NCBI RefSeq assembly: GCF_002571385.2
Contig: NW_019217822.1
Location: 224,398 to 288,397 of the forward strand
Source: Stylophora pistillata
Taxonomy: Eukaryota
Length of the DNA: 64,000 bases
Direction of reading: 5' to 3'
Shown: positions 7,544 through 63,755 of the stretch, piece after piece
Layout of the letters: the number at the start of each line of letters is the position of its first letter
Numbering within the stretch: position 1 is the first letter of the stretch
Notes under the pieces: generated by a model
The model's database searches: none
What the model was told of the DNA's origin: nothing
What the model saw: the letters and a program-made list of their open reading frames with translations, nothing else
Translations under genes and position numbers: made by a program

Positions 7544-7577
<34 letters not shown>

Positions 7578-12634: not shown

Positions 12635-12666
<32 letters not shown>

Positions 12667-13761: not shown

Positions 13762-13792
<31 letters not shown>

Positions 13793-30437: not shown

Positions 30438-30474
<37 letters not shown>

Positions 30475-34144: not shown

Positions 34145-35528
34145 TTATTAATTTATTTCTGGCACTTTTCATATCATAATTATTTGTTGATAAAATACCA
34201 ACAAAATATCAGAGAGAAGATTTGAGGCTTTTCATGGTTCTTGTTTTGTTTTCGTCTTATCATTTGATTTTTTTTTAACTCATGTTCAATTACCGATGTA
34301 CTTTGTAAATGTTGGAGTTATTTAGCAATCTTACAACTGTTATATATTTGATAATATTAGCTTTTCATGACACCTTCTGTTGTTTTTCTATATTTGTTCT
34401 TAACAAGTTATCCTAAGTTCATTCAGTTGCACTTCAAATAACTTAACTTTCCTATTTTGATTTCCTTCCTGAAAACGACTCCAAGGTTTCAATTTCGCTA
34501 TCTGCTAGTTTATTTGACGAATCCTAAAAACCATGGTAAAATTGCAAAGAAGGCGTTACAATAATCTGAATCATTTTTCAGACGAAAGACAATATTCGAC
34601 AGGTCTGAACAGAAATTACGCAAAATTTTATATTCATATTACATTAAGCTCGACGAATTCAATTTATCTTGATGAAAAATGAAAAATGGATTAAGCAAGC
34701 ATCTTTAGTACAACTGACATGATCCACGAAGGAAATGTCCTTTTTTTATAAACCGTTGTAAATAAACTTAGTTTTGTTGTGCCAAACGGGGAAAATAAAA
34801 CCAAATTTTGAAACAAAGCAGTTGCATTGAAGAAAGTTTTATTGATCGCAGAGTTTTTAACCACCCAACAACTCGCACATATATTTTTCAGCTCGTAGTT
34901 GGGAATTTCCTCCAAAATTTGCTTCCCTTTTGTTGCGGGGAGGGTGAACTGAAAAAATGACGATTAATTTAGTTAAAAAGGGGGCCATGGTTACTGATCT
35001 CATGTCGAATTAACCTTCTACAGGATTGGATCAAGAAACTCAGGTATCCCTCTACACGATTAATTGTTAACCTTAAAAAAAAACAAATAAACAAAAGAAC
35101 AGACAACACATGGGGACATTGGGATGATTTATCTGTGTTTATTGAAGTAGAGTATAGTATTTAACAAGTGCCTTTCAAAAAATTCTCTATTGCGTATGCT
35201 GTATTTTGATGTACCTGTTTAACAAAAAGTTCAGTCAAGCAGCTGACAATCTACAGATCCTGAAAATGCATTTTGTTTTTTCGTATATTCCTAGACCGGA
35301 ATATACGAAAATTCCGTGCTTATCATGCTTATACGTGCTTCAAAGGATCGACTCTAAATCTATGTAATTGCTAGCCTATCCATTTAAAGCTGATAAGCTT
35401 CATCAAGGTACTCATTATATCAAAACATAAAAAGAAAAACATAGGAAGAAAGACGTGCAATTCGTAAAGAATAAAAAAACCAAACACATAACCTGTGACA
35501 AAATTAAAAGTGCTGTATGAAAGTACGC

Positions 35529-38500
35529 TTAATTAAGTCTCTTCCCTCCCGGCCCCTTATTTTTAGGCCTCTTTTTAGGCCTCTTTTCAGGCCCCTTTGC
35601 TGGGTTCACCACAACATTCTCAAGACCATTGTTTTTAATAATATGAGAGATTACCAGGGTTCCTCTCACAATGTCGAGTGTATACTCGCCCACAGCTATG
35701 CGGGCTCTAACCTCGTTCTTCTGTTCCATGAGGGACGTAACACGCTTGATCAGTTCTAAAAAGGGAAAATTTACTTTTAGTTGAGCCCTAACTACATATA
35801 CAGTGGTTACCTTTGGGTTTTTTTCCCACTTAGCACCACAACAATTTTGAAACAGAAACTGTTCTGCAAAAAGTTTTTTTTACAACGTACGGGAGCACAC
35901 TCCGCATGCCACATGCGATCGATTATTTCAATCAGGATTATGCTTTTGTTCTAGCTGTTTTTTCTTTTTTTTCCTTAAAAATACTCACGTTTTTACAAGT
36001 ATTAATGCAATCATAAGCATCCTCCACGTTACGGTTGACAATATATCCTAATTTGGTCATGTAGAAAATCGCAAAGCAAACATTGGGGCGCTTTAAGATT
36101 GAGTGCCATTAAACAAAACCAAAGTAATACAGCGTCCAATCAAAATGAAAGAAAATAACTTTAAGAGTCAATGAGAACTCGTGTAAATCTGACTGAAACA
36201 ACCAAGTCCTTAATGGTTTTATTAATGCAGCCGTGATTGGTTTGGAGAGTAGTGCGAGTCAAGTTCTGGACCAATCACACAGCGAATTAAAAACAAACAG
36301 ATCCCGGATCACTTTCGACTCTCAATTGAAAATCGCTTAAATAAACCAACAAGGACTAAGGGTGGAGAAGACTCAGATTGCAAATGACAAACGTGGAAGA
36401 ATTCTTCTGCTGAGACCTAAGATTTATCTCTTTTAAGTTGAAGCATTGCAAACAAAAATGAGTCAAATGAAAGATTTTTCATCTGGCTCTTTTGATTAAC
36501 TAATAATAATAATAACCAGTTACCTTCTTCATATCCTTTCGTAAGGCCGTGTATTATTCCCCAGTTGTAGTGAAGGATGATACCCTAAAAGAAACAAAGG
36601 TTTAAATTTTTTAGCATGCATTGATATGGATAGTTTTTAATGCAGAGACGGTGCTCGGTTTGGCAGCTGTTCAGGACCAGTCATCATTATTTGTCGGGTA
36701 AGGTAAGGTGGGACTGGGAGGGTTTTTTGGGGGATCACATGGTCCTTTAGCTAACTGCCACTAAGGGGGGGGGGGGGAAGGGAGGATGAGGAGGTCGTAA
36801 AATATTATAGAGCCTTATCAGACTAATCGGAGATCAGGTGAATCTAATCGTGGCCAAACCCAAATTCTCTAACTCAGGCAATAGATTATGACTGGTCTTT
36901 TATTCCTTTAAAAAAAAACTGCTCCCTCAAAAATGAAAAATTAAAATTTTCCACAGTATGCCTAATGATGCACGCTTCCATTGCAAACCTTGTATACAAA
37001 GTAATATTCCACACAGAGAGTCGTGGTATTCGCTTGGTATTTGATTCTTGCCACGGAAACTCGTTAAAACTCTAGCATTTAAGGGACTAAACAAATAGAA
37101 AGTTTATACGATCATGATGATTCCGATGAAACCGGACTCCGCGCTGATATTTTGACCAAATTCAAACTAAGTCTTTTCTTTGCTTTTAGAACCATGACGA
37201 TAATGGTTTCTGGTGTTCGTGTAAGAGCAAGTAACACGTTTTCATCTTGAATAATTCGTTAATCATAATATCACCAATGAGGATATGAGTAAATACTGGC
37301 TAAATTTACGTCTGAAATGATAACTCCTATTAGGAAGATAGACTAAAGATACGACTACTTACTTTTATGATCAAGTCCGTATATTTCTTATAGAGTTTCA
37401 CTAAAATAAATGAAATTCAGAAATTATTCCCTTATGATCAAATTAGTATAGGGATGGCGTACGTCGCAGAGATCGCTCGAATTCATCTACGTATGCAAAT
37501 TCAAAATTCTCCTTGCCAGGAAGAATTAACCCTTTCACTCTGAAGATTTCATTACAATAATAATTTCTCTTACTCTCTGCTATACAATTCTTAAGATGTT
37601 ACTTTGCTGAATTTGGTATATTGGATTAACAAATAATAGATATTTTTCTCTATTCTCGTCACTTGTCTGCTTGATGCTGTATTGATGTTGTAAGGCAGAA
37701 ATCTTGCTGACTCGTGGAAGTTTAAGTTTTTCTTTTTTTAAGTTTTTCAGTAGCCATCCACCTTACCCCTGTAAGAAGTGAATAAAGAGATAATGTGGCT
37801 GAGAGCGTTTGGTTTTAATAGAGATGCACACCTTCGATGCAGTTTCCTTCAGCGGAATTCTCAAACACCAAATCAATGATTCTTTTTCTGTCGTTACCAA
37901 CTTCAGATGGTGCCGAATCCCGTTTGACATGTTTAAGGAGTTCTTCCAGTGTATCTGAAAACGTTGAGAAACATTCAAGAGATGTCTTAACTGCATGGCC
38001 TCGTAATGGATAAGGGATTCTAGCGCTATCCGGACAGGTTTACAGAAATGAAATAAGGAAGGAAAGGTGCGTGAAATTCTTGCGTTTTACAAATTTTCAA
38101 GACTCGAACACCGCTGATCTTCCCCTTGTCTTGCCTGGAGTCTGGGGCGTATCCAGGGGTGGTTCGGGTGGTTCGGTGGAACCCCCCCTTAAATTTTCCT
38201 CAAAGTGCTGGAAATCATGTTTCCTGAGACCTAGTTTTCAAAATCTCACGGGGAAGCATGCCCTCGGACAATTCTCCGAACCCCACTTGACTAAATCCTG
38301 GATCCGCCCCAGGGAGTTTCTATGTTTCAAATAATGTTCCAGTCAGGTTGCTTAATTGTCTTTGATGAAAAATCAGGAAGGCAAGCTGAGTAGGCATTGT
38401 TTGGTTTACAAACAAAAAATACGTGCTTAAGCTTATTTAGTTCCTAAGGGGCCGATCATTTAACTTTTGAGGGAGTGGGTGATTTTGAAAAAAAATTTCC

Positions 38501-40174
38501 TGCAAGCGCTTGTTGGAAGAAAAAAATTGCATGCAGTCCAAATGTAACTGAAAAAATGTACCAAACAATCGGGAAAAAATATCCTGCACAGCAGATTGCG
38601 AGAAAAAAAAATTTCTTGATGACCAGAAATCATCCACCCCGCCCCCCCTCAAATGTTAAATGGTCGGCCCCAAAACGCAAGAGCAGGAAGTAGTATGATT
38701 TAGGTAGCCTAAGTGCGTAGGCATTGTTTGGTTTCGAAACAAATTACATATCTTTACTCTCACTAGAACGCACTGCATTAAATCAGAGAGCTCGCTTCTA
38801 AACATCAATTCAACTTGTTGGCAGATGTAGTCTTAATATTGACTAGGAGGGGAGAATTGGATAGTCTATTAAAAACCACAAAACCACAGAAAAATCATCA
38901 AAACCGTGAAGACCGATTCATTTTCACAGGCCCAGTTATCAAAATCCTGACAAGTGCAGCATACAGAGGTTTCGCGGCTATTCGAGACCAGTGGAGGTGC
39001 ATAATGCCCCTCACATCGAAGAGAAACCAGAACCCAATTATTAAAAAGCCCGAACCACATCAGATAGCCATATCCGAAAACCCAATAGCATTTTCTAGGA
39101 AAACAGAAAACCAAATGCTACGAAAAAAGGAAAAATACGCAAACCGCAATGAACACCAAATCCGAAGTTTTTGGGCACAAAAACCGAAAAACCGATCTAA
39201 AGATAAGCCAAAACCGCAAAACCATAAATCCCAAATCCCCCCTTCACTTGCTAATGATTATAGAACGAACGCAATAAATGGTTAGAACTATTCACGTTTT
39301 GTAAAAGAGGAGGCGCTTACTCGAAGAGGTATAGGTAAGAGGTATCCAAAGGCTCTTAGCATTCAAAGTTTTTCGGAACATCGATTCATCTTGTTTTGTT
39401 GTGAAAAATAAACTATGGATAGGACCGACAGGATACAGATAGATTGCTAAATTAACTTACGTTCTTCACAATCTTCAACAATTTTAGGATCAGTATACGG
39501 CTCTATTCTGTTTGAAAGATCAAATTCGCCATCTGGATCCTGTTCTTCGATAACCTCACCAATATTTTTAAACAGACCTGAAAGAAAATTGTAAAGAAAA
39601 ATAACTAATTAGAACAAAATAGGGTTTTTAATAAGTTTAGCCGTCAAAACCTTACGTATTTTATCGCATAGTAGTAAGCCGCCTTTCGCTGCAAAGCAAT
39701 TTTTTAACACTCCTTGAAATTAGAACTATGCGGCACCGATTTAGAAAAATCCCATAGATTGCATAATACATGATTAGAAGGTGTTGGATGGTCACTCGGA
39801 TTCCAAGAAAACAACTTACTGTAACACCTGATGGCATTAAAATTTCACGTCTCCTCAGAAACTGAACAGGAGAAAAAACAGTATTTCTTGAACAGTACAA
39901 ACTAGTAAGCTTTTGTCCTATTCTGCTTAAATGATCAACAGATTAAAACAAGTATCTTCGTTGATCAAATGAGCGGTCTATTTTCAGTCCTTGTGAAATT
40001 CTGATTGAGGTTTAAGTGAGTGGAAAGGGAAAATCTTTAACTAGAAGAGTATCTCCTATTTTTTTTCTACTGAGGAATACAAGGCATGCAGCTATTTAAC
40101 AATTATTCCACGAGCGCGCGTCGGATATGAGATGATAGATGGCCAACAAGGCGCATAGCGCCGAGTTGGCTATA

Positions 40175-40237
<63 letters not shown>

Positions 40238-40855
40238 GAAAACTNNNNNNNNNNNNNNNNNNNNNNNNNNNNNNNNNNNNNNNNNNNNNNNNNNNNNNNN
40301 NNNNNNNNNNNNNNNNNNNNNNNNNNNNNNNNNNNNNNNNNNNNNNNNNNNNNNNNNNNNNNNNNNNNNNNNNNNNNNNNNNNNNNNNNNNNNNNNNNNN
40401 NNNNNNNNNNNNNNNNNNNNNNNNNNNNNNNNNNNNNNNNNNNNNNNNNNNNNNNNNNNNNNNNNNNNNNNNNNNNNNNNNNNNNNNNNNNNNNNNNNNN
40501 NNNNNNNNNNNNNNNNNNNNNNNNNNNNNNNNNNNNNNNNNNNNNNNNNNNNNNNNNNNNNNNNNNNNNNNNNNNNNNNNNNNNNNNNNNNNNNNNNNNN
40601 NNNNNNNNNNNNNNNNNNNNNNNNNNNNNNNNNNNNNNNNNNNNNNNNNNNNNNNNNNNNNNNNNNNNNNNNNNNNNNNNNNNNNNNNNNNNNNNNNNNN
40701 NNNNNNNNNNNNNNNNNNNNNNNNNNNNNNNNNNNNNNNNNNNNNNNNNNNNNNNNNNNNNNNNNNNNNNNNNNNNNNNNNNNNNNNNNNNNNNNNNNNN
40801 NNNNNNNNNNNNNNNNNNNNNNNNNNNNNNNNNNNNNNNNNNNNNNNNTACGCTT

Positions 40856-40889
<34 letters not shown>

Positions 40890-40922
40890 ACCAATAATGG
40901 CTAAGTCAATAAAAAGTCTTGG

Positions 40923-40954
<32 letters not shown>

Positions 40955-43900
40955 TACAGATTATAATACTTACCATCCACTTTCTTATCACATGCTGCGT
41001 CAACCACCAGTTGTTTCATCTTACCCATCACTCCATGGGGATCAGTGTGGGTGAGGGCTTTAAAATCATCTTAAATAGATGGAATGACAAATGACGTATA
41101 CCAAGAGATAGCAATCAAGATCTAGGATACTAAGATGTATCACAATCTGAGGTTGCAGAATTTTCACGAACGAAAGTTCCTTGTGTAACTCGCAGTAAAA
41201 GGCACAACTCTGTTCATTCAGCTGAGGATATTAACAACGAAGATCGCAAATTGATAGTGCTGCTCTAGCCGTATTGTTTGTCGTAGTTTTATTTACTATT
41301 ACGCAGAAGTGACTTTATATGTAGTTCTGAAAGTTTTTATAGTACCCCGTAGCGAGGCTCTTGAAAGAGCCACCCGAATTTTAGAATCAGCAGCGTTTAA
41401 TTTCAAGAGTTTGATAGCATTTACATTTCAGTTGAGTCTCTTACCAGTCTTTTCGCCGAGGCCAGCGTCTTCGAGAACTTCGTCCATTTCTTCATCAAAG
41501 TCTAACACGGATAAAGCTGTGAAAGGTAAAACGCAACACCTAGTAACTCTTTACCCAGACGCAAGGTCCGTCAAATTCTGTCCCAACTCTCCCCACCCTC
41601 CTGTGAGACGACGTAACACCCTATATCGACCATTACGAGCTACCCTGAATAAGATGTTCTTTAGTAAGATAAAGATTAAAGCAAATTTTGAAGTGAGGAA
41701 AATCAAAATTTATATCAAGCTAAGAGGTACCCCCCAAAAAAAATCCGAAGGGGTGATAACTTAATGGTGAACCCCTTATTTTTAGAGCAATTTTCTGTCG
41801 AATGTCGCGGATGTCCCTGGTTTCCGGATAGCTTAGGTTTTACTTTACTTTTCTCTCTGATTGCAATTGGTCCAGAAAAGTTGTGCCACCATTTCAACCA
41901 CAGTCAGATTGAAAACTTAAAGCAATCGCGACTTCATCGGCTTTTTCCCGCGCTTTAAGCAGTTTGCTTGTTTTTACTTTGTGTTTTCCTTGGCTCCCTG
42001 CGGCATGATTGGTCATTGCAAAAAGATTGGTTTTGGGTTTCACGGCACTCAATTAATGTTGTATTCACCGAATTGAGATCGCTTGTAATTTATCACGTCT
42101 TACGAATAATTTCTGAATATCAAACCTTTGGAATGAAAGACCTCTTTAATTTTTTCACATTTATCGTAGTTGTCAGCTACATGGCGTCCCAGGATTGTCT
42201 TTACTTTGTCGTTTGAGGGTTCGCTTCGTATTGCCTTCATCAATTCCAGTGCTTTTTCTGAAATTTAAAATGTAACACACACTTATTTTTTTAAACCTTG
42301 GTTTACATACTAACTGGTCCGCTTACTGAGCCCTAAACTGGCGAAGCTTGGAACTTGGAAACAACTTTAAGGTACACAACAAAACATATTTTACCTATAT
42401 GAAAACAGAATTAAAGAAGAAATTTATTCATGATTTACCTCTATTCCTTTTATCTTTAGCAGCTTTTAGCGTCTTCAAAGCAGGAACGATCTCCCCTAAC
42501 TAGATAAAAATTTTCTGATTAGAATCAGTTTAAGGTAATGGTATTAGAACCGAGCAGATATTCGGTTATCTTCATGTTCTAAAATATTCTCGAAAACATA
42601 CGGAATAATTGGACTCTATCATTCAGTGGATGATATTTATAGTATATGATATAACAGTGGATAGCGTTGAAGGCGCGCTTTGATTGGCTACACAAACTCC
42701 GAATAGCCTTGGCTATCCACCCCCTAGCAACTCATGCGGAATTGCACCCCAAAAATAATGTAGTCGGTGCAGAAATAAATGAGTTAAAATCATCTCTTTT
42801 ACTGTATTATCTCAATTTTATTTTAGTATATATTAAAAAAATATATTCGCCTCAATGCCGCTGGCGAGTGGTGGATATTAATCTCGCCATTTTGCGGCTT
42901 GGTAAATATCCACTACAAGCTATCTGCTCTTCAGCGAATGGTTGTCAAGTATCAAAGAGATTGTTCCAGGTCTAAAACTTTGCTTTGATCCAGGCCGACA
43001 AAGTAGAGGAGTCTTCAAAAGTGCACATGAACTCAGAATTATCTTTAAAATTTTCTGAAATTAGAAAAAAATTATGAAAAAAATTATAAAATAAATAAAC
43101 GGCCATTAATACTGAACACTTACTGAATCAGCCAACATTTTCACCGCCTCCGCCACGGATCCCTCCCCCTCACCATGTTCCTGTCCTTCACGATCATTCA
43201 TCTGTTCACCTTTTTTCAAGAGATGAGCAAGGCGAGCTGTGGTTTTGGTCATTGAGGGATGTCTGAGTTTATTGACATCTACCGGTCCATCTGCGAAAAA
43301 AAAGTGATGGACATTTTTATAGTATTTTTTAACTTAAAAAGACTGGGGCTGACTGATGGTGGTGCGATAACTTTGGACCAGGCCTAGGCAAAGCCGGTTA
43401 CGTAATCCTATTTTCATTTCCTTAGTTGAGCGCAATGGAGAGATGTTGATTTCTGGGTAAAGCAAATGATCTGCCCATAAATAATAAAGGGCAATCTATG
43501 ACTGCATACGCCTACTGTTGTATAGTTGTATAGAGTATTACAGTAAAAAAGCAATGTGGTGTAAAATGCAGAAGGGGTTAATGAACAGCTCTTATCGATG
43601 CCAAACTTGTGACAAAAGGAGGACTTGGTTAGAGCACAGTTTGTACACTAGTCAACTGACAGGCCGGGGACAGAGCAGGAAATTAATAGTATAGGTACAT
43701 GTATGAAAGCACAACGGCGGTGCCCACGGCCTCTTAGAAGGAAGACACAGTAGGCACTAAAAACTATGGCAAGTAGAATATCCACTATTTACATTAACAT
43801 TCCAAAGCAATTTGTAATTTAAAAAAATCTTATACTCAAGAAATCCTTCAGCCATGTGCAACATAGAATGATGATGAAACAACCGTATATAAAAAGCAAG

Positions 43901-44959
43901 GCACGATCAAACAGCTTTGCAACATTTTAGTTAAACTGCCTCGAGTGGTGAAGATGTAAACAAATTAATTATATGTACGAATCTGGGTTGCCCGTGTCTA
44001 TTGCCAGGTGGTTTGGTACAAGACTAATGCCGGTTAACTCTGTTACCAACCCAAGCAAACAACAAGAGGAGGTAAAGAAGAAGGAAAAAAAGGCATTTTT
44101 TAGTTGTTTGAATTCTGTAGTTATAGTGCCATGGCAACACGTAGCAATCTTTCGCGAAATGCGGAAAAAAGCAAAATTAAACATGACAGGCATACGAGAC
44201 AAACAATTTAATTACTACCCATTCAATTCGTTTTAGCTTTGCTTGAGCAACTTTTTCATTCAACAAATTTCACTTTGATGGTCAGTTTGGTGTCGTATAG
44301 GATTGCGGAAAAAGTTTTGCTCATTGACGAGTCAACGAAATCGGAAAAAAATTAAATATCAAATATCATCGTGAAATTCTGCAGCGGCTCACCATGCATT
44401 TTTTTTGGAAAAGAAAAACTAATTTGAAAATAAAGAAGTAAATTCAAATGAACTGTCCTTAATTAAAACAAAGCGCATAGCATGTAAAATTCGTTAAGAG
44501 ATAACAGTAAAGCAGGCAAAAAGGATTTCTCTTAAGCCATATTCTGGTGTATACAAACTATTTTTAATTTATGTTTTATTTCATTTCTTTGACGGAACTC
44601 AGAACCCACAACTGATTGTCGGGACTTTACCGGTTTAATGCCCCCTTTATAATCTTAGCTCTCGCTTCTTCATTCCATCTATAAAATAATTCATTCAAAA
44701 ATTTTCTGTCAATGATATTAATTCCGATTAATGAAAACATGCGCTCTATAGTGACTTGAAAACTTTCTATAACCATTGTCTCGAGACATTACGACCACCG
44801 AATGACTGATAAAAAATTGTTATAAAGGAAATGTTTACCTCGCAGGTAGTGATCTAACTCAGCCAGTTTATTGCGGACTGTATTCTCAGGAAGATGAACC
44901 TGGCTCTGAAATGCTTCAGCAGCGGAGACGAAAAGAAAAGTTAAAAGGATATAATTCAT
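35529..44959 (-). CDS. Uncharacterised secreted protein, paralog A (11 exons, ~404 aa)
   Basis: Exons: 44959-44839, 43290-43124, 42499-42439, 42257-42126, 41516-41445, 41069-40974, 39577-39461, 37954-37832, 37400-37363, 36584-36524, 35755-35529; all GT-AG and in phase. Signal peptide MNYILLTFLFVSAAEA. Exon-by-exon homology to paralogs B and C. Confidence 0.88.
37526..37725 (+). mobile_element. piggyBac-like MITE
   Basis: Starts TTAACCCTTT; shares the family body. Confidence 0.55.
38141..38312. mobile_element. MITE with GGGGCG(G/T)ATCCAG TIRs
   Basis: Ends ctggggcgtatccagg and cctggatccgccccag. Confidence 0.7.
38447..38671. mobile_element. MITE
   Basis: TIRs ggggccgatcatttaacttttgaggg and ccctcaaatgttaaatggtcggcccc. 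Confidence 0.7.
38846..39246. mobile_element. AAAACCG-rich MITE
   Basis: Same family as 11216-11688. Confidence 0.6.
40097..40213. repeat. Hairpin repeat element next to the assembly gap
   Basis: Arms aacaattattccacgagcgc..ggatatgagatgat and atcatctcatatcc..gcgcgagtggaataattgtt. Confidence 0.75.
40245..40848. other. Assembly gap (N run) in intron 6 of paralog A
   Basis: Run of n. Confidence 0.99.
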
Positions 44960-47359
44960 CTTCCCCCACTGCCTTCCACCTGGTAATGACTTGCACGCGA
45001 TGGTTGACCCGTTAGACAACTGAGATAAATAACATCGTGTCGGCTTATTGCGTGGGAGTCATCATCCATTCATCACAAAGCGTTGGATCGATTTACAATT
45101 TCTCCCAATACTGTTGCTATATTTAACCAAGTGATGATTGACACCTAAATTCTCCAAACTAGCTTCCATGTTACTGCTCTGTAATGGAGAATTTTGATTT
45201 TAAACTTGTGGTCAAACAATAGCCATACTCATGTCTAACCATTGTTTTTAGTAGGCATTGTATTAAAGCATGTAATTAATTTTGAAATGATCCACAGGGG
45301 ATGTAAATGAAGCGCAACGCGGAAAAATCTTTAATTGCTCGATTAAAGTTCATATGGATTTTACAGATTCCCGAAATGTACTTGAAAATTACGGCTTTTT
45401 GATTGGGTACTGATTTGAAATATCTAACCATAGGTAAACTTAAGATCCTCATAGCTGTAAATAGGTATTCCCATGCCGTACCATATACTTTGAAAACCTC
45501 CTCCACACTTTTGTTGTTCTTTTTACACCAATAAGCGAATTACTTATTTTAAGCATTGATACAAATTGATGACAACGCGGAAAAACCAAACTAAAGCTGC
45601 TTCAAGCCAATTTAATTGAATACAGTCAATAAACGGTTGGGGTTTTTTGTTTTTAATGAAAAGTAGTTTAATGAAAAGTTGTTTTTAATGAAAAGTAGTT
45701 ATTGAGAAGGCGCTAATGGAACACGACCGCAAAATCTTCTCTGCAGTAATTCTTTAAGAAAAATCGAAAGTCTCCGCTTGAATCAATCCTTAATGAGGAC
45801 AATACTAACCAGCATTTATGAAGGTACTTTTGAATAAAGAAACAAAATGTTAAAGATGAATTCAGGCCCTGATCTGATATTAATTGCACATTCGCGGCTA
45901 AGCTTCAGTGTCGCACTTGAAAATGCCATGCAAAAACAATCTGCGAAGAAAAACCCAAACTGGTTACTCAAGTTGTATTTCATTCGGCCCGTTAGTCCTT
46001 GCCTGTAAATTTAACTTAAAGTATTTTTATCTTCATTGACCCAGGGTTCACCAATTCATGCACAGGAAATGGTAATGTATTTGAATAAAAGAAGACATTC
46101 CCGTGGGAAAGACTCTACTATCCTGGCAATGTAACCTTGAACGAAAATGAGATAAAAAGAAAAATGAAAACAAAGCGCTATCAAAAGATTTCTGCTATGC
46201 GAAAAAGTTAACCTCGTGGTTAGCCCATAACAGGCCGTGATGCGATTAATCGCTAATCCTAAGTTTTATCGGGAGTTACATGCAAAATGAGGAGCTAAAA
46301 GCACGAAATGAGACATATATACAGAGGTAGTCTTTAGTGTTAAATTTTCCATGGTTTTCGTTGCGTTCAATCTTTCTTAAATTTTAGGGTGGCGTATGTT
46401 AAATACTCTCTTAGAGACCGATTTATCATTCGAAAAGATTTTCTTATTTTCTATTTTTTCTTATTTATTGTCGGGAGGTTACCAGTCGACTTACTATTCA
46501 CTCAGTTTTGTCTATGAAGTACCGTCAAGTGCATATCAAGTCTTACCTGCGTTTTTAACCATAGCAGTCATCAGTGCGATACTCGCGCGCGCATCCATGC
46601 CACGAGTCTTTCGGTTATTGAGTCAATATCAGTTTATTATCAATTTTTGTGGTTGAATAAAAAAAAAGGACACTATTTCTTTACGAAGTTTACAGATATT
46701 ACATTCAAGACAGTAAAAACTCATTCGTTTCTCCCTCGGATTTTATTTGTTAAAAAAAAAAGAAGTATAAAACAAGAAAACTTAGACACCAATAACCCTG
46801 TGAGAGCAGCACAATACGGTAAGGCGCAAATTGCCAAGTTCTTGAATAAAAACGGTACAACTAATTAAAGAAGTTAAGAAATGAGACTTCTTTTGCTAAA
46901 AGTTAATTATTCCAATTTCTAAATATGGGATGACCATAGCCTTTTAAATGAAACAAATTTATCTGCTTTTTTCTTCCGTCTGTTTGTTTCCAATGTAAAC
47001 TACGACTGTTGCATATCCAGCGGGGAAAAAGGCAATGAGGCTCTACCTATCAGCCCTACAAAAGAGAAAAAGAAAAGTTACTCATTTGACAGATTGATCC
47101 GCAATGTTTTATAATCTATCAAACATTTCTACGCAAAGTTGCTAAATGTAGGTTCAAAACGGGCCTAGTTTGTACAGAGTTTAAACCAGAGACTTTTTGC
47201 TATGCCAGAGAATCGTCACCTTTATTCAGTGTTATCTTTAAATTGTTTGATCACCGACGTTATATACAAGTAACGCGATTTCCTTCCGGCTTACAGCTAC
47301 AGAACAGTGACAGTTTTCAGGAACACAGCAAGATTTAGAATTCCCATACTTACACTTCG

Positions 47360-53300: not shown

Positions 53301-55262
53301 CACCGACGCAGCCCCAAACAGTTTCTTTCGAAACTGTCAGCCTTTACCCACGTAACCTAGACAACCCGTTCCCCAGTTTTGACCTATTTCTTTGAAACAG
53401 TAACCAACCGTTTACATGAAACTTGGGAACTTGTCTTAGGGTGCGAGATAACTCGGCTGAAGGCCTTGTCTCACCTCGGCATGAGGAATAGCGCTGTCAC
53501 GCGGGACAAGTTTCTGTACATACTTCGGCTCGCCTTCTCGACATCCTACGACTAGACGGCTGAAATTTTTCTCGGAACCCGTGTGTTTTATGTCGGCGGA
53601 GAGACCGATGAAGAAACAGCTGTTACAACTCACAACTCCAAATAAACGCTTCATAAAGTTTTCTCAAAGGGGATTTGTCTCTAACCTGAGACCTGTTCTT
53701 TACTCAGGTATCGAAAAAATAAAATCAACTGCATTTTTGTTCTGCGAGCTTTCAGTATACAGTACTACCGACTGTACTTAATTTTCTGTCATCGTTAAAA
53801 CTAAAATTTTACAAGTTGAAATGATTTGTCTCGATGTTTTGTATCCGTCTGGATATTGTCTCGTTTTTGGCCCATGAAGATGGTGGAAGCGGTTGTGCTA
53901 TACATATAGGATTTTGCTGGAGACTTTGATTCGCTTACTTAAATAGTTCGGCCGTGGCTCTGATCCATAAGTAAAAATATCCAATAACCCCCTCTAATTG
54001 CAATGCTCTCAAAAATGGGATCATCGTAACTGTTTTTGATTTAAAGAAGGCCTAAAGATAAAATTAGTAGGGTCATTTTATTGTGCAGTGTTAGTCTTAA
54101 CTAAAAACATTGATACAAGTTTTTCAGATATGATTTGAAATTTTTCCCCAGGAAAACAAACTAAAAAGGTTAAAGATACGATCCATAAAAAAAAAAAATG
54201 TTTAAAAGTATTGAAATAGTTTTAAGCCACCTTAAAAGCGTTTCGCTGAAAGAGATATGCATGATTTTTACATTCACAATTGATTACTACTGAAACATTT
54301 GTCTCCACATCTATTAATATCTCTGACCAGTTCTAAGAACAATCGATCTTAAAGTGTCAAGCGAAACAAAGCGTTTTCCCTGAATGCGGAAAATTTGTCA
54401 GCCTCTGAGAATCCGGCTCAACAAAAACTCATTCATCCAAAAAATCCTGATAACCTGAAAGAACTTTGCATCATTAAGTACAATTAATGAGACTGCCCTG
54501 AACGCGGAAAATATGTTGGAAACCATAACCTCGTTGTTTCGCTCTAAGAAATAAGATTCTTCTTTAAGAAATAAGGACTCTTGATTTCAAATCACTTAAC
54601 TATGTTGCCAAGCAACAAAAGGAGGCTTTTCTCAGAGGCGAAAAAAATATCGGTAGATTCGGCTTGGAACTGAGCCTATTGTAAAATAGATTTCGTAGCT
54701 TGGGAAACAAAAAAGCCAGTTTCTTTTCACAGATTTCGCAAGGTAGAAGGAATTCTTTTAAATTAATGTTTTCAGTGGAACATGTGAACCGAAATGAACC
54801 ATGATTTGTTTTTCTAATTTTTCATCGCGTTGGTACATAAGGCAGATTGGGAAGTGCGCAAAGATTCTCGACATTTGTAATGAATAGGAAAAAAAGCTTT
54901 AACTTCATTCCATTTCAATATGCTCATCGATGAGAGAGGTAGAATAGGTAGGACTGATTGGGTAGCTAAAATGAAAAAAAACTGAAAACTGAAATGAGTA
55001 AATCGCTGTAAATCTCTAACTATCAAAAAATGTTTAAGCAAAAATGATACCGACTCACAGGTAAGAAAGAAATACATCTTTGGTTAACTTATGGAACGTT
55101 ACAAACCAGACAAACATGTTTAAAGTGAAATCATGAACATAAATTAAACTTACCCTTAAGTAAATGATGCAGTCTATTGGACCTCGCCACTGAAAGATCA
55201 ACCAGACTCTTAAATGCTCCCACGGTTGAAGCAAGAAGCAAGGTTGCCAAGATAAACTTCAT
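47360..55262 (-). CDS. Uncharacterised secreted protein, paralog B (11 exons, 388 aa)
   Basis: Exons: 55262-55154, 52982-52822, 52640-52580, 52107-51967, 51661-51572, 51051-50929, 50376-50257, 49823-49725, 49150-49113, 48366-48306, 47523-47360 (1167 nt, open). Signal peptide MKFILATLLLASTVGA. Confidence 0.9.
47580..47776 (-). mobile_element. piggyBac-like MITE
   Basis: Family body on the minus strand; ends ggggttaaaaggtttaa. Confidence 0.6.
50656..50845 (+). mobile_element. piggyBac-like MITE
   Basis: catattctccatactgttctctatac..gctgacaaagagaatttg..ggagaaattag..tcaaagggtcaa. Confidence 0.7.
53132..53346. mobile_element. Palindromic non-autonomous retroelement (Penelope-like) with a 13-bp TSD
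   Basis: cccacgtaaccta at 53119-53131 and 53347-53359; ~65-bp inverted arms centred near 53201. Confidence 0.8.
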
Positions 55263-56199
55263 TTTCTTCCACTGCGTGCGCGATCAGCAGACCTCATGGA
55301 AAACTGACCTACACAATCTAGGGCTTTGCTTTTGTGAGCGATTCAACCATCCATTACATTGCAAAGTGTTGCCGAGGTTTAATTTCTCCCTACCGTACCA
55401 AGTGTTGCACTCACTCAAGCAGTAAGCTGGCAATTTTTTTAAAATTCTCCCTACTTTCTTCCGTAATGGTTTACTGCGATGCGATGGGAGAGTTTACATT
55501 TTGGCCTGCGATCAAATTGTGTACTCGTTAATTACCTCATGCAATTGTTTTTTACAAGGCATTGTTTGCTTCGTGTAACTAACCCCTAAGGGATTTTAAT
55601 TTTCTTTTTAAAAAGCGGAAAAAACTTCGATTCGTCACGCTAGAGGAACGTCGATTCTGTTTATAAAAATTTTGCAGCTTTACAGAAAATAAACCGTGCC
55701 TATGTCAGTTCATTTGTTAATGGCTGATGTATATTCCAGTGCTTCTGTTATCAGGGAAGTGATTTAGGGCCGTTATCGTGGTACTCCGATACGCTGTTGT
55801 TATGCTCCCACGCAATATGATGTAATTGTTGTGTATTTTTATTGTTGTGGCGTGACAGTGTGATTTTTTAAATATGACGCTAAGTCAATTCAGCACGAGG
55901 CGCGCGAATAACTTACTTAGCGAGAGGCCTCATTTTAGTTTAGAAAATGGGTAATCTAAAATCTAATTTCTTGACGACCTTAAACCGGCTTTGGAGACAG
56001 AACTGGTTGCAGCCTCCAACCCCTTCCCTCAAAACAACTTTGTGGGGGTGGGGACAGGGAGGAGCGGAATATCGCGGAGTTCCAGAACTTAAGGATCTGA
56101 TAAATAGATGGTCTATGTGATTTCGCCAAATCTATCGCCTATCGTTAAATAATTCGAAACAAAGTTCCCGACCCAAATGGGGAAACTATGAACTTAGTT

Positions 56200-56477
56200 A
56201 AAGGCTGATAGTTTCGAAAGAAACTGTTTGGGGCTGCGTCGGTAGGAGTAACGAAATAATTTGGATATATCAACAAAGTTGAAATGGTAAATTGGCCACC
56301 GTAACGATTACAAAAGCTGACGTTTCGAGCGCTAGCCCTTCGTCAGAGCGAAATCATCGCGAAATCATCGCGAAATCATCGCTCCGACGAAGGGCTAACG
56401 TTCGAAACGTCAGCTTTTGTAATCGTTACGGTGGGCAATTTACCATTTCAACTTTGTTGATATATTCAAATTATATC
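56200..56477. mobile_element. Palindromic non-autonomous retroelement (Penelope-like) with a 9-bp TSD, opposite orientation to the 53 kb copy
   Basis: aacttagtt at 56191-56199 and 56478-56486; ~95-bp inverted arms around a (cgaaatcatcg)x3 spacer. Confidence 0.8.
56316..56349 (-). ncRNA. Putative minimal type I hammerhead ribozyme
   Basis: GCU-CUGACGA-A-GGGC-UAGC-GCUC-GAAA-CGUC-AGC: CUGANGA and GAAA core, 4-bp stem II, GUC cleavage triplet, GCU/AGC stem I, minimal stem III. Confidence 0.6.
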
Positions 56478-57630
56478 AACTTAGTTTGGCCCAATAAACG
56501 GCTGTCTCGTAATTGCGCTTATCATTTCAAAGGATACGCCGATAACAATTTTAAAACAGGAGGTTTCCTGAATGCGGAATAAATGTCCAATTCTGAGAAA
56601 ATTTAAAAACAAAAACACCTTTGGCGGCCGGCGGTGACCCTATCGACAATAGGGAGCTTAAGATACAGGCGTTTTCGGGGCGACGGCCATGTGACAACCC
56701 AGATTCACTGGGTTAGAGGTTGCCGTTTTGGCGTCATAATTGATGACGGCCAGCCTTTGCGACTTCTTCGAAGTTCGTCGAGTTTCACTTTATAAATTGA
56801 GGCTTTTTTGTCGTAGCATAGTTACGTTTGAAGAATCCCGCCACTCCTCGTCCTTTACTACGACGCTAATCTTATTGGCGATGAAGAGTTCTTGGTTTTG
56901 TATGAAATATTTCCGTCTAAAAACCCTAATTTTCCAAATGAAAATCTCGATAGATCTGAGGTGTTCGTTTTCGAGGTGCATCTACGAATTGATAAAGGGA
57001 ATGGCAGCAAGCAAAAATTCCCTTTTATGTTAAGAATTCAAGTACTGTATGCGTACGTGCCCAAAACTTACCTCGACGATTTGGACTTCATTGTGTTGCC
57101 TCGGTCATTTTAAGTTATCTCTGTTACATTAATGGAAATTTAATTTGTAACTTTAATGCTCCTCAGTATATGGGAATCAAATCGTATCAATTGTGATGTA
57201 TGTTCCAGCGGAAACGATTGAGAGTCTTTAATTTGTACGTGCTTCTTCTGTTCTTGCTACGTCATTGTTGTTGTGCTCCTCATAAGATGAAGCGGACTCA
57301 GTACGGTGAAGTTATTGTTTTAGTATCACAATACTGACCCTTCAGCAGGCTTTAATTCGCTTTTGAAAGCGGTCAGTTTTTCCCGCGCAGGCAGAAAGGA
57401 ACACGCCTGGTAAATCTAAACACTTGGAAGCATTTTGGAGTTGATAAATAACAAACACAGTTCAATGTTGCAATTGGTAAATCAGCATCTTTCGCAAATT
57501 TGATGAAATGGCGTTTAAATTTGGGATTTTCTGTAGTGATATAATTTGAAGGCTTTGCCCAAAGAAATTTAAAAGGCAAAGTACTGCTTTCAAAATCAAT
57601 CAAAGCAAGCTGCGTTGAAATATTTGACCT

Positions 57631-57703
57631 ACCTCGTTCCCAGGGTACACGGCTCTCTTCCTCTCTCGAGGGAGAAAAAGAGAGGACCCTGAGAACGAGG
57701 TTG
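57631..57703. repeat. Short palindromic repeat
   Basis: Arms acctcgttcccagggt and accctgagaacgaggt. Confidence 0.7.
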
Positions 57704-58482
57704 AGATTCGAAGAGTCCTTTGCGGTGCCATGACGTCACTTTGTGATCAGGGGTAGGAAATTATTGATGTAGTGCAAGGTTGTCGATTGAACAAATTTGG
57801 CAAAAAGATGCCGGTATCCAATGCAATGTTTCTATTTTTTGGATATTTGATTATGGATTTGATTCCAAAGTGTTAATATGAAAGGTTTAGTTTAGTCGAG
57901 TGTAAGGGGATGGCCAGTTAATTCTCATTTAGTTCGCTTGCGGGCAACACAAGTGAGAGATGATACACAACAAAACATTTGTTAAATATGAAATTTATTT
58001 GGATTTCAACCAAGTAAACATGATTTAAAGGCGAGAAGTGCGTACTAACTAAAGACTGAACTCGGCGTATCATGTTTCACGATTGTGAAATGATCGGTAA
58101 TTTATTAACCGTGTGGTACAACTTGATAGGTATACCTGAGAATTGAATAAATGAAGACAAAAACTTTTGTTAGACTAACAGAAAAGACCATAGCTAATGC
58201 ACATAAACATATACGAGTGGAAATGAGGTACAAATTTAAAACAGACCAAAGGAAATTTGAAAACAATCGAAGCTATAAATTAAAGGTGTTTTGCATTTAG
58301 GAGTTAGTTGATAACAATATTCCATACGATGCTAACGAATACTATTATTTTTTTTGTCTCTATTCTTCGTCGAAATAAGCGACTCTTTGAAAAGGAACTT
58401 TCCTATCTATTTCTTAGAATCTGGAAACAGAGCTAAACGCACATTTTAAATGAAAAGGGAAAGTTTCTTACTCACAGTATGA

Positions 58483-61400
58483 CTAATTAACGGAAGTGGT
58501 AGATTTGAGAGCATCTGATAGCTGATCCAGGTTCTCCTCAACGAGATCAGCAAGCTTTTTAAACCTGTCATCTGTTGGCTTTTCGTCTCTCTTTTCCTCG
58601 CCTTTTTCCTCTTCCTTCTCTTCACTTTTCTCCTCCCACTTCTCTTCACCCTTCTCCTCGGCTGAAAGTAATGATTCCATTTTTTTATGCACAGCGAGAC
58701 CAACCAGAAGCGCTCTTCTCATGCTGTCCACAACATAGTCGCCAGCGAGTAAGAAAGCTTTCTCTACCTTGTGACTCGCCATAAGAGTTGTTACGGCCTT
58801 GATCATTCCTGGAGAAGGAAATGGTCTTCTTATCTGACACTTTCTTTCAAAAAAGTCTAAGGCGTTAGGTAAGTGGAGAGCTACGAGACACAAAATTACG
58901 CCTTTATAGACAGAACTTGTACCAGGGGGTGGCAAATTTTTTACAAGTGTGTCGCACATGTTAGAAATGTCACACTAAATGTTCACAAAACTTTTCTGGT
59001 GTTTGAACGAATTAGTTGTCAGAGGAACTTTTTTTCTGCATCCCTTGCTCTCTCGAGTGTGTTCTTTGCCCAAATAGAGTAATAAGTTGTTGCGTTAATA
59101 GTAAGCTTTTCCACAATTTTTTTGGGGTATACTGATCCACAAATTACTTTGTTTGATTATTAGCGACCAAGGCTCTTAAACTTCTAACTGTTTTTTCGGA
59201 GGGGGGTGTAGATTGGGATAATGACATACCTTGAAGACGTTTTCCCTCCACCTTATGCAAAATTACCAATTTTTTGTAGAGCTTGATTTTCTGTAATTGT
59301 TTACGAAAGAGGTAAAACTATTCATTTATTTATTTTCATAATCGAGTTATGATATAAAAGAGGTTAGTCGTATCACTGATCGTCATTAACACCATATATG
59401 GAGAAATGCATCGATGAAACATTACTTACATCCAACACCGTGCTGACTGCAAATCTAGCAAATCTCACTAAAAAGGTAATGAAATAGAAATGAGCAGTTA
59501 AGGAAAATTTTTTTTCCTTTTCACTTGGTTCAGCTAATTTACAGCTTGTGCTGACATGGTATAATATTTTAGTTTTCCTTTGTTTTATGAAAAAAAAATG
59601 GCTCCACTTTTCTGTTTGTCTGTAACGTTTACAGATCATGGTAAGCGTTGTGACGCGGGAAGTTGGAGCGCTGTTCTTTTGTTCCCAGGATCTTTGTACC
59701 AATTCTCCTCACTGTCTCCCATACAAATCCAATGACGTTTGTTTAGAGAAATTGGTATTGGGTGAATCATAAGAATCAAGGGCAACAAGGAAAGAGCGGG
59801 TAAATAAAAAGAACATACCTTCCTTGCAATATGAAAAAACGAGCCTGAGGAATCTGGCCTTCATGCTTTTTTCTGGTTTCAAGGACTGGATAAAATCTAG
59901 GATACAAGGTTTGATTATGACTAAGACGACTTTGAATAATGCGGAGCCCTCCATAAGTACACTGCTAGCCCTTGGGCTCAGTCTCTTTTGAAGAAACGTT
60001 AATGCTTTGTAGTTAGCGGAGTGCATAAAATCCAATGAAAGATGGTTTGGACAAATTGTTCACTGAGATATACAAGTTCATATTTTGAGATTAGACAAAA
60101 GGATTAATCTTTTGATGATATTATGAAAGGGAAGTCGAGAGCACTAAAAGGAAGTAAAAATTGAGAAATGTAAACAATTTTCAAGTGAAGACAACTGGTT
60201 GGTTGGATAAAAAGAAAGGATAAGATTGTGGAAGCTACTGGAAAACTGCACTTGAGATTATAGTGGTGGCTGACTTTAAACGAAATATAGAGAATGTAAA
60301 AAATGAAGAGGGGGAAAGTTCAGGGAATGTAGGATCTCTGACTCACTTCCTCTGCAAAACTTGCTCCGTGGGTTGTACAAGAATGGGATAAACTTGTCCG
60401 AGATATCATAGTCACTTTCTTTGTCTTCCTTCTCCACAATTTCCCCAATTATTTTTACCAGACCTAAGAAATCGTATAGAAAAGACGCTTTATATTGTTA
60501 AACAGGCTGTAATGACGTTGAAAAAAACACTAAAGGAAACATTTCCGTTATTACAATTTTCTTCACACTTGTGCCGCTGCTAAAAAAGTTGTTATCAAGG
60601 TTCTAAATGAAGTGTTACGTCACTATCAACTCATGTAAGTATCTTTTTTAATCTCTTGTCTACAAGCATCTTCTTAACATTTGCACCCTGATCTATTTTC
60701 TTCTTATAATAATCCTCATCTAATCTTAAGCACACAGGCTGTCACAAAGGTACTTTTCCGACTGATACGAGAAATATTAGTCATAAATGAATACGAATTC
60801 ATATTATAATAAACTCTGGTAGAATTGAAGACCGTGACGAAAATTTTGATCGCCCGCCGTAAAAGCCATTAGTCCATAGACACCCTCAAATAGATACAAC
60901 GAAATTTATGCTTACCATCTAATTTGGTATCACATGCGGCATCAGCCACTAAACCTCCAACTGCCATGATAGCTTTTGCTCCAGGATAGTTGTTAAGTCC
61001 ATTCATGAATGCAATGTGCGTAAATGCTTCGAAAACATCTTAACAAAGAAAAAAAAATGAGCCATAGGTCCTGATAAGTTTGTTTAGGCAAATTTCTGTA
61101 ATTCTGAGTGTGTGACGAGAATTTTTTTATCTCTTTAATATTTACGAGTTGAAGAGCATGAGCTGTGCGAGGATAGTATTTTTAAAGTTGTGAGTTAATG
61201 TACAGTGTAATATAATTCTTCTGAGAAGGTAACTTTGCTTTGCAGGTTTTTTCTGGTTTGTAGCACAACTTATAAACCAGCTCATATGATTATGCAAATG
61301 TTTATTACCTTTACCAACTGAAGCATAAGTACCTTTTCAGTATAGTTATTTCCTACTTAGGTGGCCGAACACAGTTTTTGATACCGGTGTTTCTTTCACC

Positions 61401-63755
61401 ATTTTGTCTCTCGGTCGCCAAAACTGGCAGAAAGCAAGTTAACAACACAAACTTTGTATTTCGGATAGTTAAGCTGACGTATGTGCCGTTGCCAAGGTGA
61501 CATGAATAAATATAAACAGACCTTTAAAATCGGTTTTGTTCCTTTTTAGAAAATCTAGTCATTAGTTTTTCTTTATAATTTGCATGCAACGAGCTTGTAA
61601 CGATACTCACAAGTTAGGACCATTTTGCTAACAATCTAACAGAGAGATCTCTAATTATCCCCTGATGAAGGTTGACTCAATTATCTAGAATTTCTTTTAT
61701 TAAAAATCAATTTTTTTTCCATACTCCAGTTACTTATTTCCTAAAGTATTTTCGTGCTAAATTTCGTGAAATTCTAATGAGTGGTTCTCAAGAAATAGGC
61801 ATATTTCCAATAAAGCAATTTTCCATTCAAACGCAATTTTTTTACTTACTACGCACGCGCTGCATTTAACTGGGCTCTCTCGGTAACAACGAAAAAGCTG
61901 AGAATTGCAGGGTTCTTTGCACCGTTAACTTTTCTAACATATCTGTAATAAAAGATTAAAGCCCTCAATACACTGCGCCAACTATAGAGAAAAATAGTAC
62001 AGAGTGCGGATACATGTTTAATAAATAAAATTACCGCTCTATTGACGGCGTGTTTGTTTTTTTGCAATCCTTGTGCCCGCGCTGAATTGCGTCAGGAAAA
62101 ACGCGTACGAAAATTGTGTTCAGCCACCTTAACCCTTTGAATACGAAAACGACCATGCTTTTTTCAGTTCTAATTTGGCGATACAAACTTAACCTCACTT
62201 TGTTGGTCCTTATATGGATCATGCGTTACAGTATTTGCAGTTTTGAGACACCATGGCCTCAGACCTTGAGTTCACATGACCTAGATCAACAGTTCGTGTT
62301 TGGATGCGTTCAAATCGATTCGGTTTCTCGATTTTCTGGCCGTTTATAAGTGTTTTTCGAGCCATTTTCCCTCTACAGAAGCCCTCCCGACGGCATCATT
62401 AAGCTGGAATGTGGGCAGAGGCAAGCCTCTGAAGGAAAACAGAGTTGAGAGATGGTTTCTTGTAGACTGGACCGCCAACGATGCTTTACTGCCAGCTTGG
62501 CGAGTTCACAAGTGAAGTTGCCTCTTGAGCCCCTCTGTGGATGGCTTCCAGGACCTACCAACGGCTATGTGGCCAAGTTTTGACCGGTAAAAATTTTAAT
62601 CGATGCGATACTTTGCTGGTAGGACTGGATGGCCCGACACGATGCTAAAAATTCTTTGAAATGGAAATGACAGGAGTTGCGTTTTCGAGTTATGGTCGAA
62701 TTACCCAGAATTCTTTTCGGGCATGAACAAGGTAACGGTTGTGTTCGCGACACTAGCTTTCATAAAATAAAAAAACAAGGGCTGGCAGATAAAGTGAGAA
62801 GGAATTTTCTGGCCAGACTCCAAGATCTGGCCCTGAGGTGTGATTTGAACGCAAACTTTTGTTTTTTTTTTAGCAAGTTTTTATCTTAAAAGATCGACAT
62901 GTTTTTGGTGTTTCTCTTCGAGCAAAATGCTGCACTTTGGGATTTGTTTCCATACGAACGGTTCACTGCAATGAATATCAGGAATCATTGTGGGCGTTTT
63001 AGGTTGCAATAGGTGTTACATCAACTAGCCGGCACAATTTACACACTTACATAATGTTGTGTCTTAAGTTCAACAAGAAACAAGTATCAAAAGTGGTAAA
63101 GGTATTATCTGGAAACATGTGTTCACTTAGTATGCAAAGGGTTAATCAGACTTGAACATGATTTACATTTGTGCGAGACATTTAAAGTATGCTTGTACTC
63201 TACATCAACAACAAAGAAAATGATTTTCACTTGAGCAGTTTACTTAAAAGTGTACTTCAAAAATGGTCCTGCAGTTTTAGCTAAAGTGCGCGCGGTACTA
63301 TTTAAGTACGATCGCAGTACAACTATTATTGATGCAGTATACTTGTAGTATACTTCAAGGTTATCCTTTTTTGTAAGGGCTAGCTTAAGTGTTAAAAAAT
63401 ATTATTAACGCTTTCTTGTTAGACTGACACAGAGCATATTTCTGTTACCTAAGAATGTTCGGACATTCACCAAAAAAAAAAATCCAGGTTGAAAACCAAT
63501 TGGAGAGAGTTTTTAGCTTAAACTTGCATTATATATTCATGAAGATTGAGTTTCTCAATTTTTTATCCAGCTTCCAGGTATTTTTTTTTTTAAGTAAATA
63601 GTGGAAAGGAAATCAATGCTTTTCATCCTATTTTCAGATATATAAACAAACCTGTATGAATTTCTTACCAAAGGCTTGTTGTTCTGCTTCTTCAATGACC
63701 TGCCCCATTACTTTGGTGAAATCCAAGTCATCCGAACCTAGCTGGTCCAGTAAAC
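58483..63755 (-). CDS. Uncharacterised protein, paralog C of the secreted family (exons 5-11; 5' end beyond the window)
   Basis: Exons: 63755-63669, 61038-60916, 60463-60347, 59896-59819, 59467-59430, 59290-59230, 58808-58483. Same phases and same 38- and 61-nt exons as A and B; DVFEAF..CDTKLD and GMIKAVTTLM..GDYVVD. Confidence 0.88.

Follow-up and report, generated by a model that had tools for sequence, protein, structure and literature searches.

Stony corals encode many lineage-restricted secreted proteins, and little has been established about what these do in calcification, mucus, immunity and symbiosis. Among the described families, CARP/SAARP are recognized by a very high Asp/Glu content and by their detection in the skeleton proteome. 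SIL1, a co-chaperone of the endoplasmic reticulum (ER) lumen, has a signal peptide, a length of about 400-460 amino acids (aa) and an all-helical build. Here we analyzed a 64,000-nucleotide (nt) stretch of the Stylophora pistillata genome (RefSeq assembly GCF_002571385.2, contig NW_019217822.1, positions 224,398 to 288,397; hereafter the window), which carries a tandem array of three genes, C, A and B. The array consists of three intact paralogs with a strikingly rigid exon plan that belong to an uncharacterized family. RNA demonstrates that A and B are transcribed; the evidence for C is its RefSeq model.

With CARP/SAARP and other lineage-restricted secreted coral families, the proteins of the array share a probably secreted nature, restriction to corals, an acidic low-complexity stretch and quick evolution. 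Here, however, the acidic part is a short linker and the bulk of the protein is a structured core, predicted to be helical, with four cysteines; the Asp+Glu content is 15-18%, and no sequence relation to CARP/SAARP was detected. The likeness to SIL1/HspBP1 (PF16782) consists of the signal peptide (in SIL1), a similar length, the all-helical build and one database name, whereas there is no sequence or profile similarity and the present family is multi-copy, fast-evolving and without an ER-retention motif. The nearest entries are the RefSeq genes LOC111322539 and LOC111322501 together with their orthologs. Genes B and C are identical to these two and are already in RefSeq as "uncharacterized protein", and A is a third paralog that has the exon plan, the four cysteines and the conserved motifs in common with the group. 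No member of this group has a name, domain or published function, and a full-length entry for A was not found there. An original prediction made from the DNA letters had called the family unrecognized; this holds only in part, as B and C and several orthologs were already annotated.

Organization of the gene array

A six-frame self-comparison of the window placed three co-oriented genes on the minus strand in the transcription order C, A, B, running from 63755 to 58483 (the in-window part of C), from 55262 to 47360 (A) and from 44959 to 35529 (B). Gene models were built with collinear exon-sized matches as anchors, and splice sites were read off the sequence. A plus-strand reading of the array gave only a spurious open reading frame (ORF) match and was dropped for the minus-strand matches. 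Each gene has 11 coding exons, all junctions of A, B and the in-window part of C are AG/GT with polypyrimidine tracts, and each spliced gene forms one unbroken ORF.

The phase series of A and B is identical (1,0,1,1,1,1,1,1,0,1); C follows it from exon 5 in the window, and its exons 1-4, which lie outside, continue it. Three exons have a constant size in A, B and C, namely exon 3 (61 nt), exon 9 (38 nt) and exon 10 (61 nt). These sizes recur in the Pocillopora ortholog of A, and the Oculina, Desmophyllum and Porites proteins have equal residue counts at these exons. Pairwise protein identity among the three is 31-37%. The original prediction had proposed three real, spliced and co-oriented genes with these phases, these fixed exon sizes and low amino acid identity, and each of these points was recovered on re-reading or borne out by the transcript evidence given below. 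Three corrections apply: exon 2 of A most likely ends at 52822, A has a twelfth, non-coding exon, and C is not truncated but cut only by the end of the window, with exons 1-4 just beyond it.

Structure and transcription of gene A

The features of gene A are as follows (window coordinates).

47055-55284, minus strand: gene A, 388-aa product, supported by RNA from four runs and by conservation
55262-55154, minus strand: exon 1, 109 nt, with the ATG
52982-52822, minus strand: exon 2, 161 nt, donor inferred
52850-52875, minus strand: acidic (GAG/GAA)n stretch in exon 2, read from the sequence, following the conserved motif at 52980-52882
52640-52580, minus strand: exon 3, 61 nt
52107-51967, minus strand: exon 4, 141 nt
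51661-51572, minus strand: exon 5, 90 nt
51051-50929, minus strand: exon 6, 123 nt
50376-50257, minus strand: exon 7, 120 nt
49823-49725, minus strand: exon 8, 99 nt
49150-49113, minus strand: exon 9, 38 nt
48366-48306, minus strand: exon 10, 61 nt
47523-47354, minus strand: exon 11, with the stop codon at 47362-47360
47353-47056, minus strand: intron in the 3' untranslated region (3'UTR), 298 nt, GTAAGT..AG, with non-coding exon 12 from 47055

RNA reads and contigs over 47300-53299, drawn from four runs in four studies, support nine of the ten coding introns of gene A. Exact joints were seen between exons 3/4, 4/5, 5/6, 6/7, 7/8, 9/10 and 10/11, with up to about 90 reads per run, and at exons 1/2 and 8/9 there are loose read ends whose letters are those of the adjacent exon. 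Another loose end, at 47353, matches 47031-47054 and thereby reveals the 3'UTR intron. This junction follows the stop codon by only 6 nt, and exon 11 is not the terminal exon. At the other end of the gene, an RNA contig reaches about 22 nt upstream of the ATG. First mates map to the plus strand in both raw-read runs (X21 and X24), which is the pattern described for minus-strand RNA in most stranded libraries, and depth in X24 is about 70-110x from about 6% of the run.

Within exon 2, depth drops at about 52884, adjoining the (GAG/GAA)n run, which is probably masked. The donor at 52822 (CATGTG/GTAGGG) is kept as GTG/GTAAGA in Pocillopora. Based on the depth fall-off, the Pocillopora donor and the 404-aa length of the ortholog, we set exon 2 to 52982-52822, which yields the 388-aa product. 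A donor at 52798 (396-aa model) was rejected: Pocillopora has no GT there, and the depth is also against it.

For gene A, word-based protein searches and an exhaustive search with exon 11 recovered a 53-aa exon-11 fragment but no product of full length, and the gene may be unannotated or poorly represented in databases.

Two repeated sequences lie within the introns of gene A. A repeated element, present at 53124-53300, 56265-56485 and 12464-12549 and visible in all reading frames, has one copy in intron 1; the copy at 53124-53300 shows extreme depth on both strands in the four RNA runs, with many opposite-strand joints at about 53200. In intron 6, 50500-50899 is similar to 4101-4163 and 5449-5523 and represents an interspersed repeat; its RNA depth is high on both strands and is unrelated to the gene A transcript.

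Genes B and C

The features of gene B are as follows.

35119-45169, minus strand: gene B (LOC111322539, XP_022781382.1), 404 aa, with UTRs reaching 45169 and 35119
44959-44839, minus strand: exon 1, 121 nt
43290-43124, minus strand: exon 2, 167 nt
42499-42439, minus strand: exon 3, 61 nt
42257-42126, minus strand: exon 4, 132 nt
41516-41445, minus strand: exon 5, 72 nt
41069-40974, minus strand: exon 6, 96 nt
40245-40848, no strand: assembly gap (run of N) in intron 6, separated by 125 nt from the exon-6 donor and by 667 nt from the exon-7 acceptor
39577-39461, minus strand: exon 7, 117 nt
37954-37832, minus strand: exon 8, 123 nt
37400-37363, minus strand: exon 9, 38 nt
36584-36524, minus strand: exon 10, 61 nt
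35755-35529, minus strand: exon 11, stop included

The spliced model of gene B is identical to RefSeq XP_022781382.1. Two intronless 1.8-kb complementary DNA (cDNA) contigs from two public runs (L008 and L009) encode the full 404-aa protein and match all 11 exon borders. Both contigs join exon 6 (end 40974) directly to exon 7 (start 39577) without losing a letter, and in alignments with orthologs no residues are missing at this junction. Because the cDNA contigs cross from exon 6 to exon 7 unbroken, the assembly gap is purely intronic and affects neither coding sequence nor frame.

The features of gene C are as follows.

58483-63755, minus strand: in-window part of gene C (LOC111322501, XP_022781345.1), 454 aa
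about 64050-66685 in window-equivalent numbering, minus strand: exons 1-4, past the window end, found in flanking DNA (L005)
63755-63669, minus strand: exon 5, 87 nt
61038-60916, minus strand: exon 6, 123 nt
60463-60347, minus strand: exon 7, 117 nt
59896-59819, minus strand: exon 8, 78 nt
59467-59430, minus strand: exon 9, 38 nt
59290-59230, minus strand: exon 10, 61 nt
58808-58483, minus strand: exon 11, stop included

The in-window exons 5-11 of gene C are contained exactly in XP_022781345.1. Beyond the window, exons 1-3 measure 109, 221 and 61 nt, and exon 4 spans about 144 nt, a size calculated from the residues it covers in RefSeq and not measured; exon 1, about 2.7 kb past the window end, encodes the signal peptide. 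Exons 8-10 (59230-59896) are conserved in the Oculina, Desmophyllum and Porites orthologs. In the GenBank model PFX31192.1 and in the Pocillopora C-lineage models, exon 7 is joined to exon 11, and the cysteine count thereby becomes odd; the skipping may reflect alternative splicing or mis-annotation.

Distribution of the family in stony corals

To identify further members, we aligned exon 11 of A, B and C and used the resulting 53-residue profile in an exhaustive hidden Markov model (HMM) search. The search returned 18 proteins, with family members at E = 1e-9 to 1e-24, and full-length matches within the family reached E = 1e-66 to 1e-200. Gene A is 35-37% identical to every family member with which it was compared. 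The 398-Mb assembly of S. pistillata itself holds only the three copies A, B and C. The types found in other corals are listed below.

Pocillopora: B type and C type (database proteins), and an A-type ortholog on locus L010
Oculina: C type
Desmophyllum: C type
Porites: C type

Annotated orthologs comprise Pocillopora LOC113668575, LOC113668623 and pdam_00001519/1521, Oculina patagonica LOC144658764, Desmophyllum pertusum OS493_037601, and proteins of Porites lobata and Porites evermanni. All relatives found belong to stony corals, and on this sequence evidence the family appears so far to be restricted to them, as the original prediction of a lineage-restricted family had supposed, although this range is a lower bound. 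Additional exon-11 fragments were observed on coral-like contigs.

The tandem arrangement itself is shared with other corals. In P. damicornis, the ortholog of A, whose exons are 47-82% identical, lies directly upstream of the ortholog of B, and a GAF-PDE gene on the other strand comes next, as in the window. A coral contig (L006) carries a C-type gene (2515-8276) followed by an A-type gene (10842-14377), the first exon of which ends in ..RLHHLLKG as in A. Since the tandem order is kept in P. damicornis and on this contig, the duplications are old and retained. A further coral contig from ENA (L007, 892-8342) carries a family member of A/B type.

Rate of evolution

To investigate how the genes evolve, we estimated nonsynonymous (dN) and synonymous (dS) divergence from P. 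damicornis and their ratio (omega), with the neighboring phosphodiesterase gene for comparison.

Gene A: amino acid identity 68%, dN 0.21, dS 0.52, omega 0.40
Gene B: amino acid identity 66%, dN 0.22, dS 0.43, omega 0.52
Neighboring phosphodiesterase gene, best-conserved exon matches: amino acid identity 87%, dN 0.065, dS 0.37, omega 0.17

The nonsynonymous divergence of A and B is about three times that of the phosphodiesterase gene, a baseline that is skewed towards conservation. Across A and B, exons are 79.2% identical at the DNA level, compared with 80.3% for alignable non-coding sequence. The family thus evolves fast, as had been predicted, yet under purifying selection overall; omega is below 1, and diversifying selection is not shown.

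Polymorphism was also seen in the RNA runs, where seven of the nine exonic variants listed for gene A are nonsynonymous. In exon 11 of A, the raw-read runs contain two haplotypes at frequencies of roughly 30-50%; an 82-nt stretch (47411-47492) holds 7 differences between them, nearly all nonsynonymous. The haplotype Q363H, L364M, I370V, N372R equals an independent ENA fragment (P0001).

These data bear on whether one or more of the three genes might be decaying duplicates (pseudogenes) or artefacts of gene modeling. Such a reading could appeal to the missing full-length annotated product of A, to exons that are no more conserved than alignable introns, and to the C-lineage models that skip exons 8-10. 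However, the three ORFs are complete with canonical splice sites, A is well expressed and correctly spliced, its Pocillopora ortholog is intact and annotated (404 aa), dS exceeds dN, and exon sizes, phases and cysteines are all kept. We therefore regard decay or artefact as very improbable.

Protein features and predicted structure

All three proteins begin with a hydrophobic N-terminal leader that ends in an A-x-A-type cleavage site. After the leader, no 19-residue hydrophobic window exceeds 1.6 in A, B or C, and none of the C-termini read in the family (QAPP, KRLN, TSVN, FWEK and DLFQ) is KDEL-like. Four cysteines, one each in exons 4, 6, 7 and 8, are invariant in eight family members, and the mature parts of A, B, C and the Oculina, Desmophyllum and Porites proteins contain exactly four. 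Charged residues make up about 30% of the proteins. In exon 2, the A and B types carry the motif DGP..TKTTA..LLKKGE.MND (A, 52980-52882; B, 43288-43190), which also occurs in Pocillopora and one other coral; next comes a linker that is either acidic or rich in Gly/Ser. Exon 2 of the C type differs. After exon 11, A has no tail, B a basic one and C an acidic one; the Oculina, Desmophyllum and Porites proteins have a Pro/Ser/Thr-rich tail and then, behind basic residues, a short acidic helix. The helix encoded by exon 6 is conserved and fairly hydrophobic, with charged helices on either side. The original prediction had recognized the signal peptides of A and B, their exon-2 motif and acidic stretch and the one-per-exon cysteines, and had proposed a secreted product; the present analysis agrees on each of these and adds the leader of C.

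An AlphaFold model built from 11 sequences is all-alpha, with a core predicted local distance difference test (pLDDT) of 70-87 and a predicted template modeling (pTM) score of 0.52; a first model from six sequences (pLDDT 44) was unusable. On these features, the family probably consists of soluble helical proteins that are braced by disulfides, are exported and differ in their charged tails.

We compared the family with known domains and folds. As in the original prediction, no domain was recognized: Pfam gave no match for single exons, for three full-length members or for 11 members, only noise far below the cut-offs. Sequence searches of PDB, by profile and with a single protein, yielded only designed helical repeats matching one helix, the best at E = 7e-6 over a 50-residue helix, and ESM Atlas searches gave no usable match. 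Foldseek on the 11-sequence model, which is of medium confidence, returned nothing below E = 0.36. With VIA-align, the same model matched four-helix bundles and nothing else; their Z of 5-6 is within the noise that the tool states for helical models. In these superpositions, residues 160-243 of the C model overlie bromodomain-like proteins and designed helical repeats at 4-15% identity, which reflects a common arrangement and is no evidence of kinship.

One database name points elsewhere. The older GenBank model of C, PFX31192.1, bears the UniRef name "Nucleotide exchange factor SIL1", and the signal peptide, the length of about 400 aa and the all-alpha build would also suit an ER-lumenal co-chaperone of the SIL1 type, the nucleotide exchange factor of BiP. 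However, the Pfam SIL1 profile (PF16782) matched neither three members at E<=10 nor 11 members at E<=1, and no Sil1/HspBP1 chain appeared in PDB sequence searches at E<=10 or in Foldseek and VIA-align searches with the medium-confidence model. A six-frame search of the S. pistillata genome with the same profile gave no match, but as its controls were silent too, this carries no weight. The C-termini ..QAPP, ..KRLN and ..TSVN lack a KDEL-like signal, and a threefold tandem, fast-evolving, coral-only family is unlike a conserved single-copy eukaryotic chaperone cofactor. A SIL1-type function is hardly credible, and the name "SIL1" is unsupported and misleading.

Neighboring sequence

Outside the array, three further features of the window were observed.

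about 24456-34837, plus strand: GAF-GAF-PDEase phosphodiesterase gene, collinear with P. damicornis (L010 28457-19012), with introns aligning too
33668-33970: tandem low-complexity repeat, (EEQRNRGT)n in minus-strand frames, in a stretch of strong AT skew (-0.25 over 32001-34000)
6-591 and 3265-3850: pair of about 585 nt, 100% identical, in direct orientation and 3.26 kb apart

The last pair may stem from a very recent duplication or from an artefact of the assembly.

Possible functions of the family

The evidence as a whole makes it likely that the three loci are real genes for secreted proteins and belong to a coral family that is new and unclassified. In the mechanism we propose, each 390-450-aa product would enter the ER via a cleaved N-terminal signal peptide and fold into an all-helical, soluble core that two disulfides brace. 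As it has neither a membrane segment nor an ER-retention signal, it would then be exported. The conserved core (exons 3-11) would probably serve as a binding or scaffold module, and the variable exon-2 linker, acidic or Gly/Ser-rich, would set charge and glycosylation together with the C-terminal tail.

Several points weigh against this view or narrow it. The call of secretion is a simple reading of hydropathy and cleavage sites, and the 11-sequence structure model is mediocre, with a mean pLDDT of 54.6. The model of gene C rests on RefSeq; older C-lineage models omit exons 8-10, although RefSeq, Oculina, Desmophyllum and Porites retain them. The read tables do not show the exon-2 donor of gene A directly. 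As to taxonomic range, the result is a lower bound, since the full-length searches were word-limited and the exhaustive search used the 53-residue exon-11 profile only. Finally, cell-type, proteome and localization data on the family were not found in the literature searched, a full-text search with the family accessions and locus tags found no paper, and the role that we would favor, as an extracellular component of mucus, matrix or secretory granules, is a guess that we consider possible but doubtful.

One more specific role is in the skeleton. As secreted proteins of the skeletal organic matrix or of calcification, the family members might bind calcium or mineral through the acidic or Gly/Ser linker, while the helical core would organize the matrix. 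The secreted appearance, the acidic stretch in exon 2 and the occurrence of the family only in skeleton-building corals fit such a role, and tandem, fast-evolving families are typical of biomineralization toolkits. In contrast, Asp and Glu make up only the modest share given above and the acidic run is short. As weak evidence, XP_022781382, XP_022781345 and PFX31192 were absent from those texts and supplements of the Stylophora skeletal-proteome papers that were searched, an incomplete set, and the Desmophyllum accessions were absent from the main text of a Desmophyllum skeletal-proteome preprint. A skeletal function is quite unlikely.

A second role is in defense, symbiosis or venom, in which the products would be secreted effectors, for example alpha-helical and membrane-active proteins whose exon-6 helix inserts into target membranes. 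Raised nonsynonymous divergence, mostly nonsynonymous polymorphism, the conserved and fairly hydrophobic exon-6 helix between charged helices and the tandem array of paralogs are consistent with this idea. However, omega is below 1 overall, no toxin or pore-former family or fold was matched, and no expression data tie the genes to cnidocytes, gland cells or immune cells. The four-Cys core, kept across distant coral genera, equally fits a housekeeping extracellular role. We consider such effectors decidedly unlikely.

In its boldest form, the reading of the array as a new coral family would make it a stony-coral innovation: a new all-alpha, two-disulfide fold whose paralogs serve as extracellular effectors on the surface of the coral and are diversified by selection, acting for instance in microbe or symbiont recognition or in membrane attack, with A expressed, highly polymorphic and missing from annotations. 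This combination is rather unlikely.

The present analysis defines a coral orphan family by its gene architecture, four cysteines, variable tails, kept tandem order and fast divergence. It corrects a misleading "SIL1" name, suggests that a well-expressed gene, A, has no full-length protein entry, and shows that older C-lineage models drop three conserved exons. If the products do act as surface or matrix effectors, the family would offer a coral-specific handle on the interaction between host and environment; otherwise, it would be one more orphan family, properly described.

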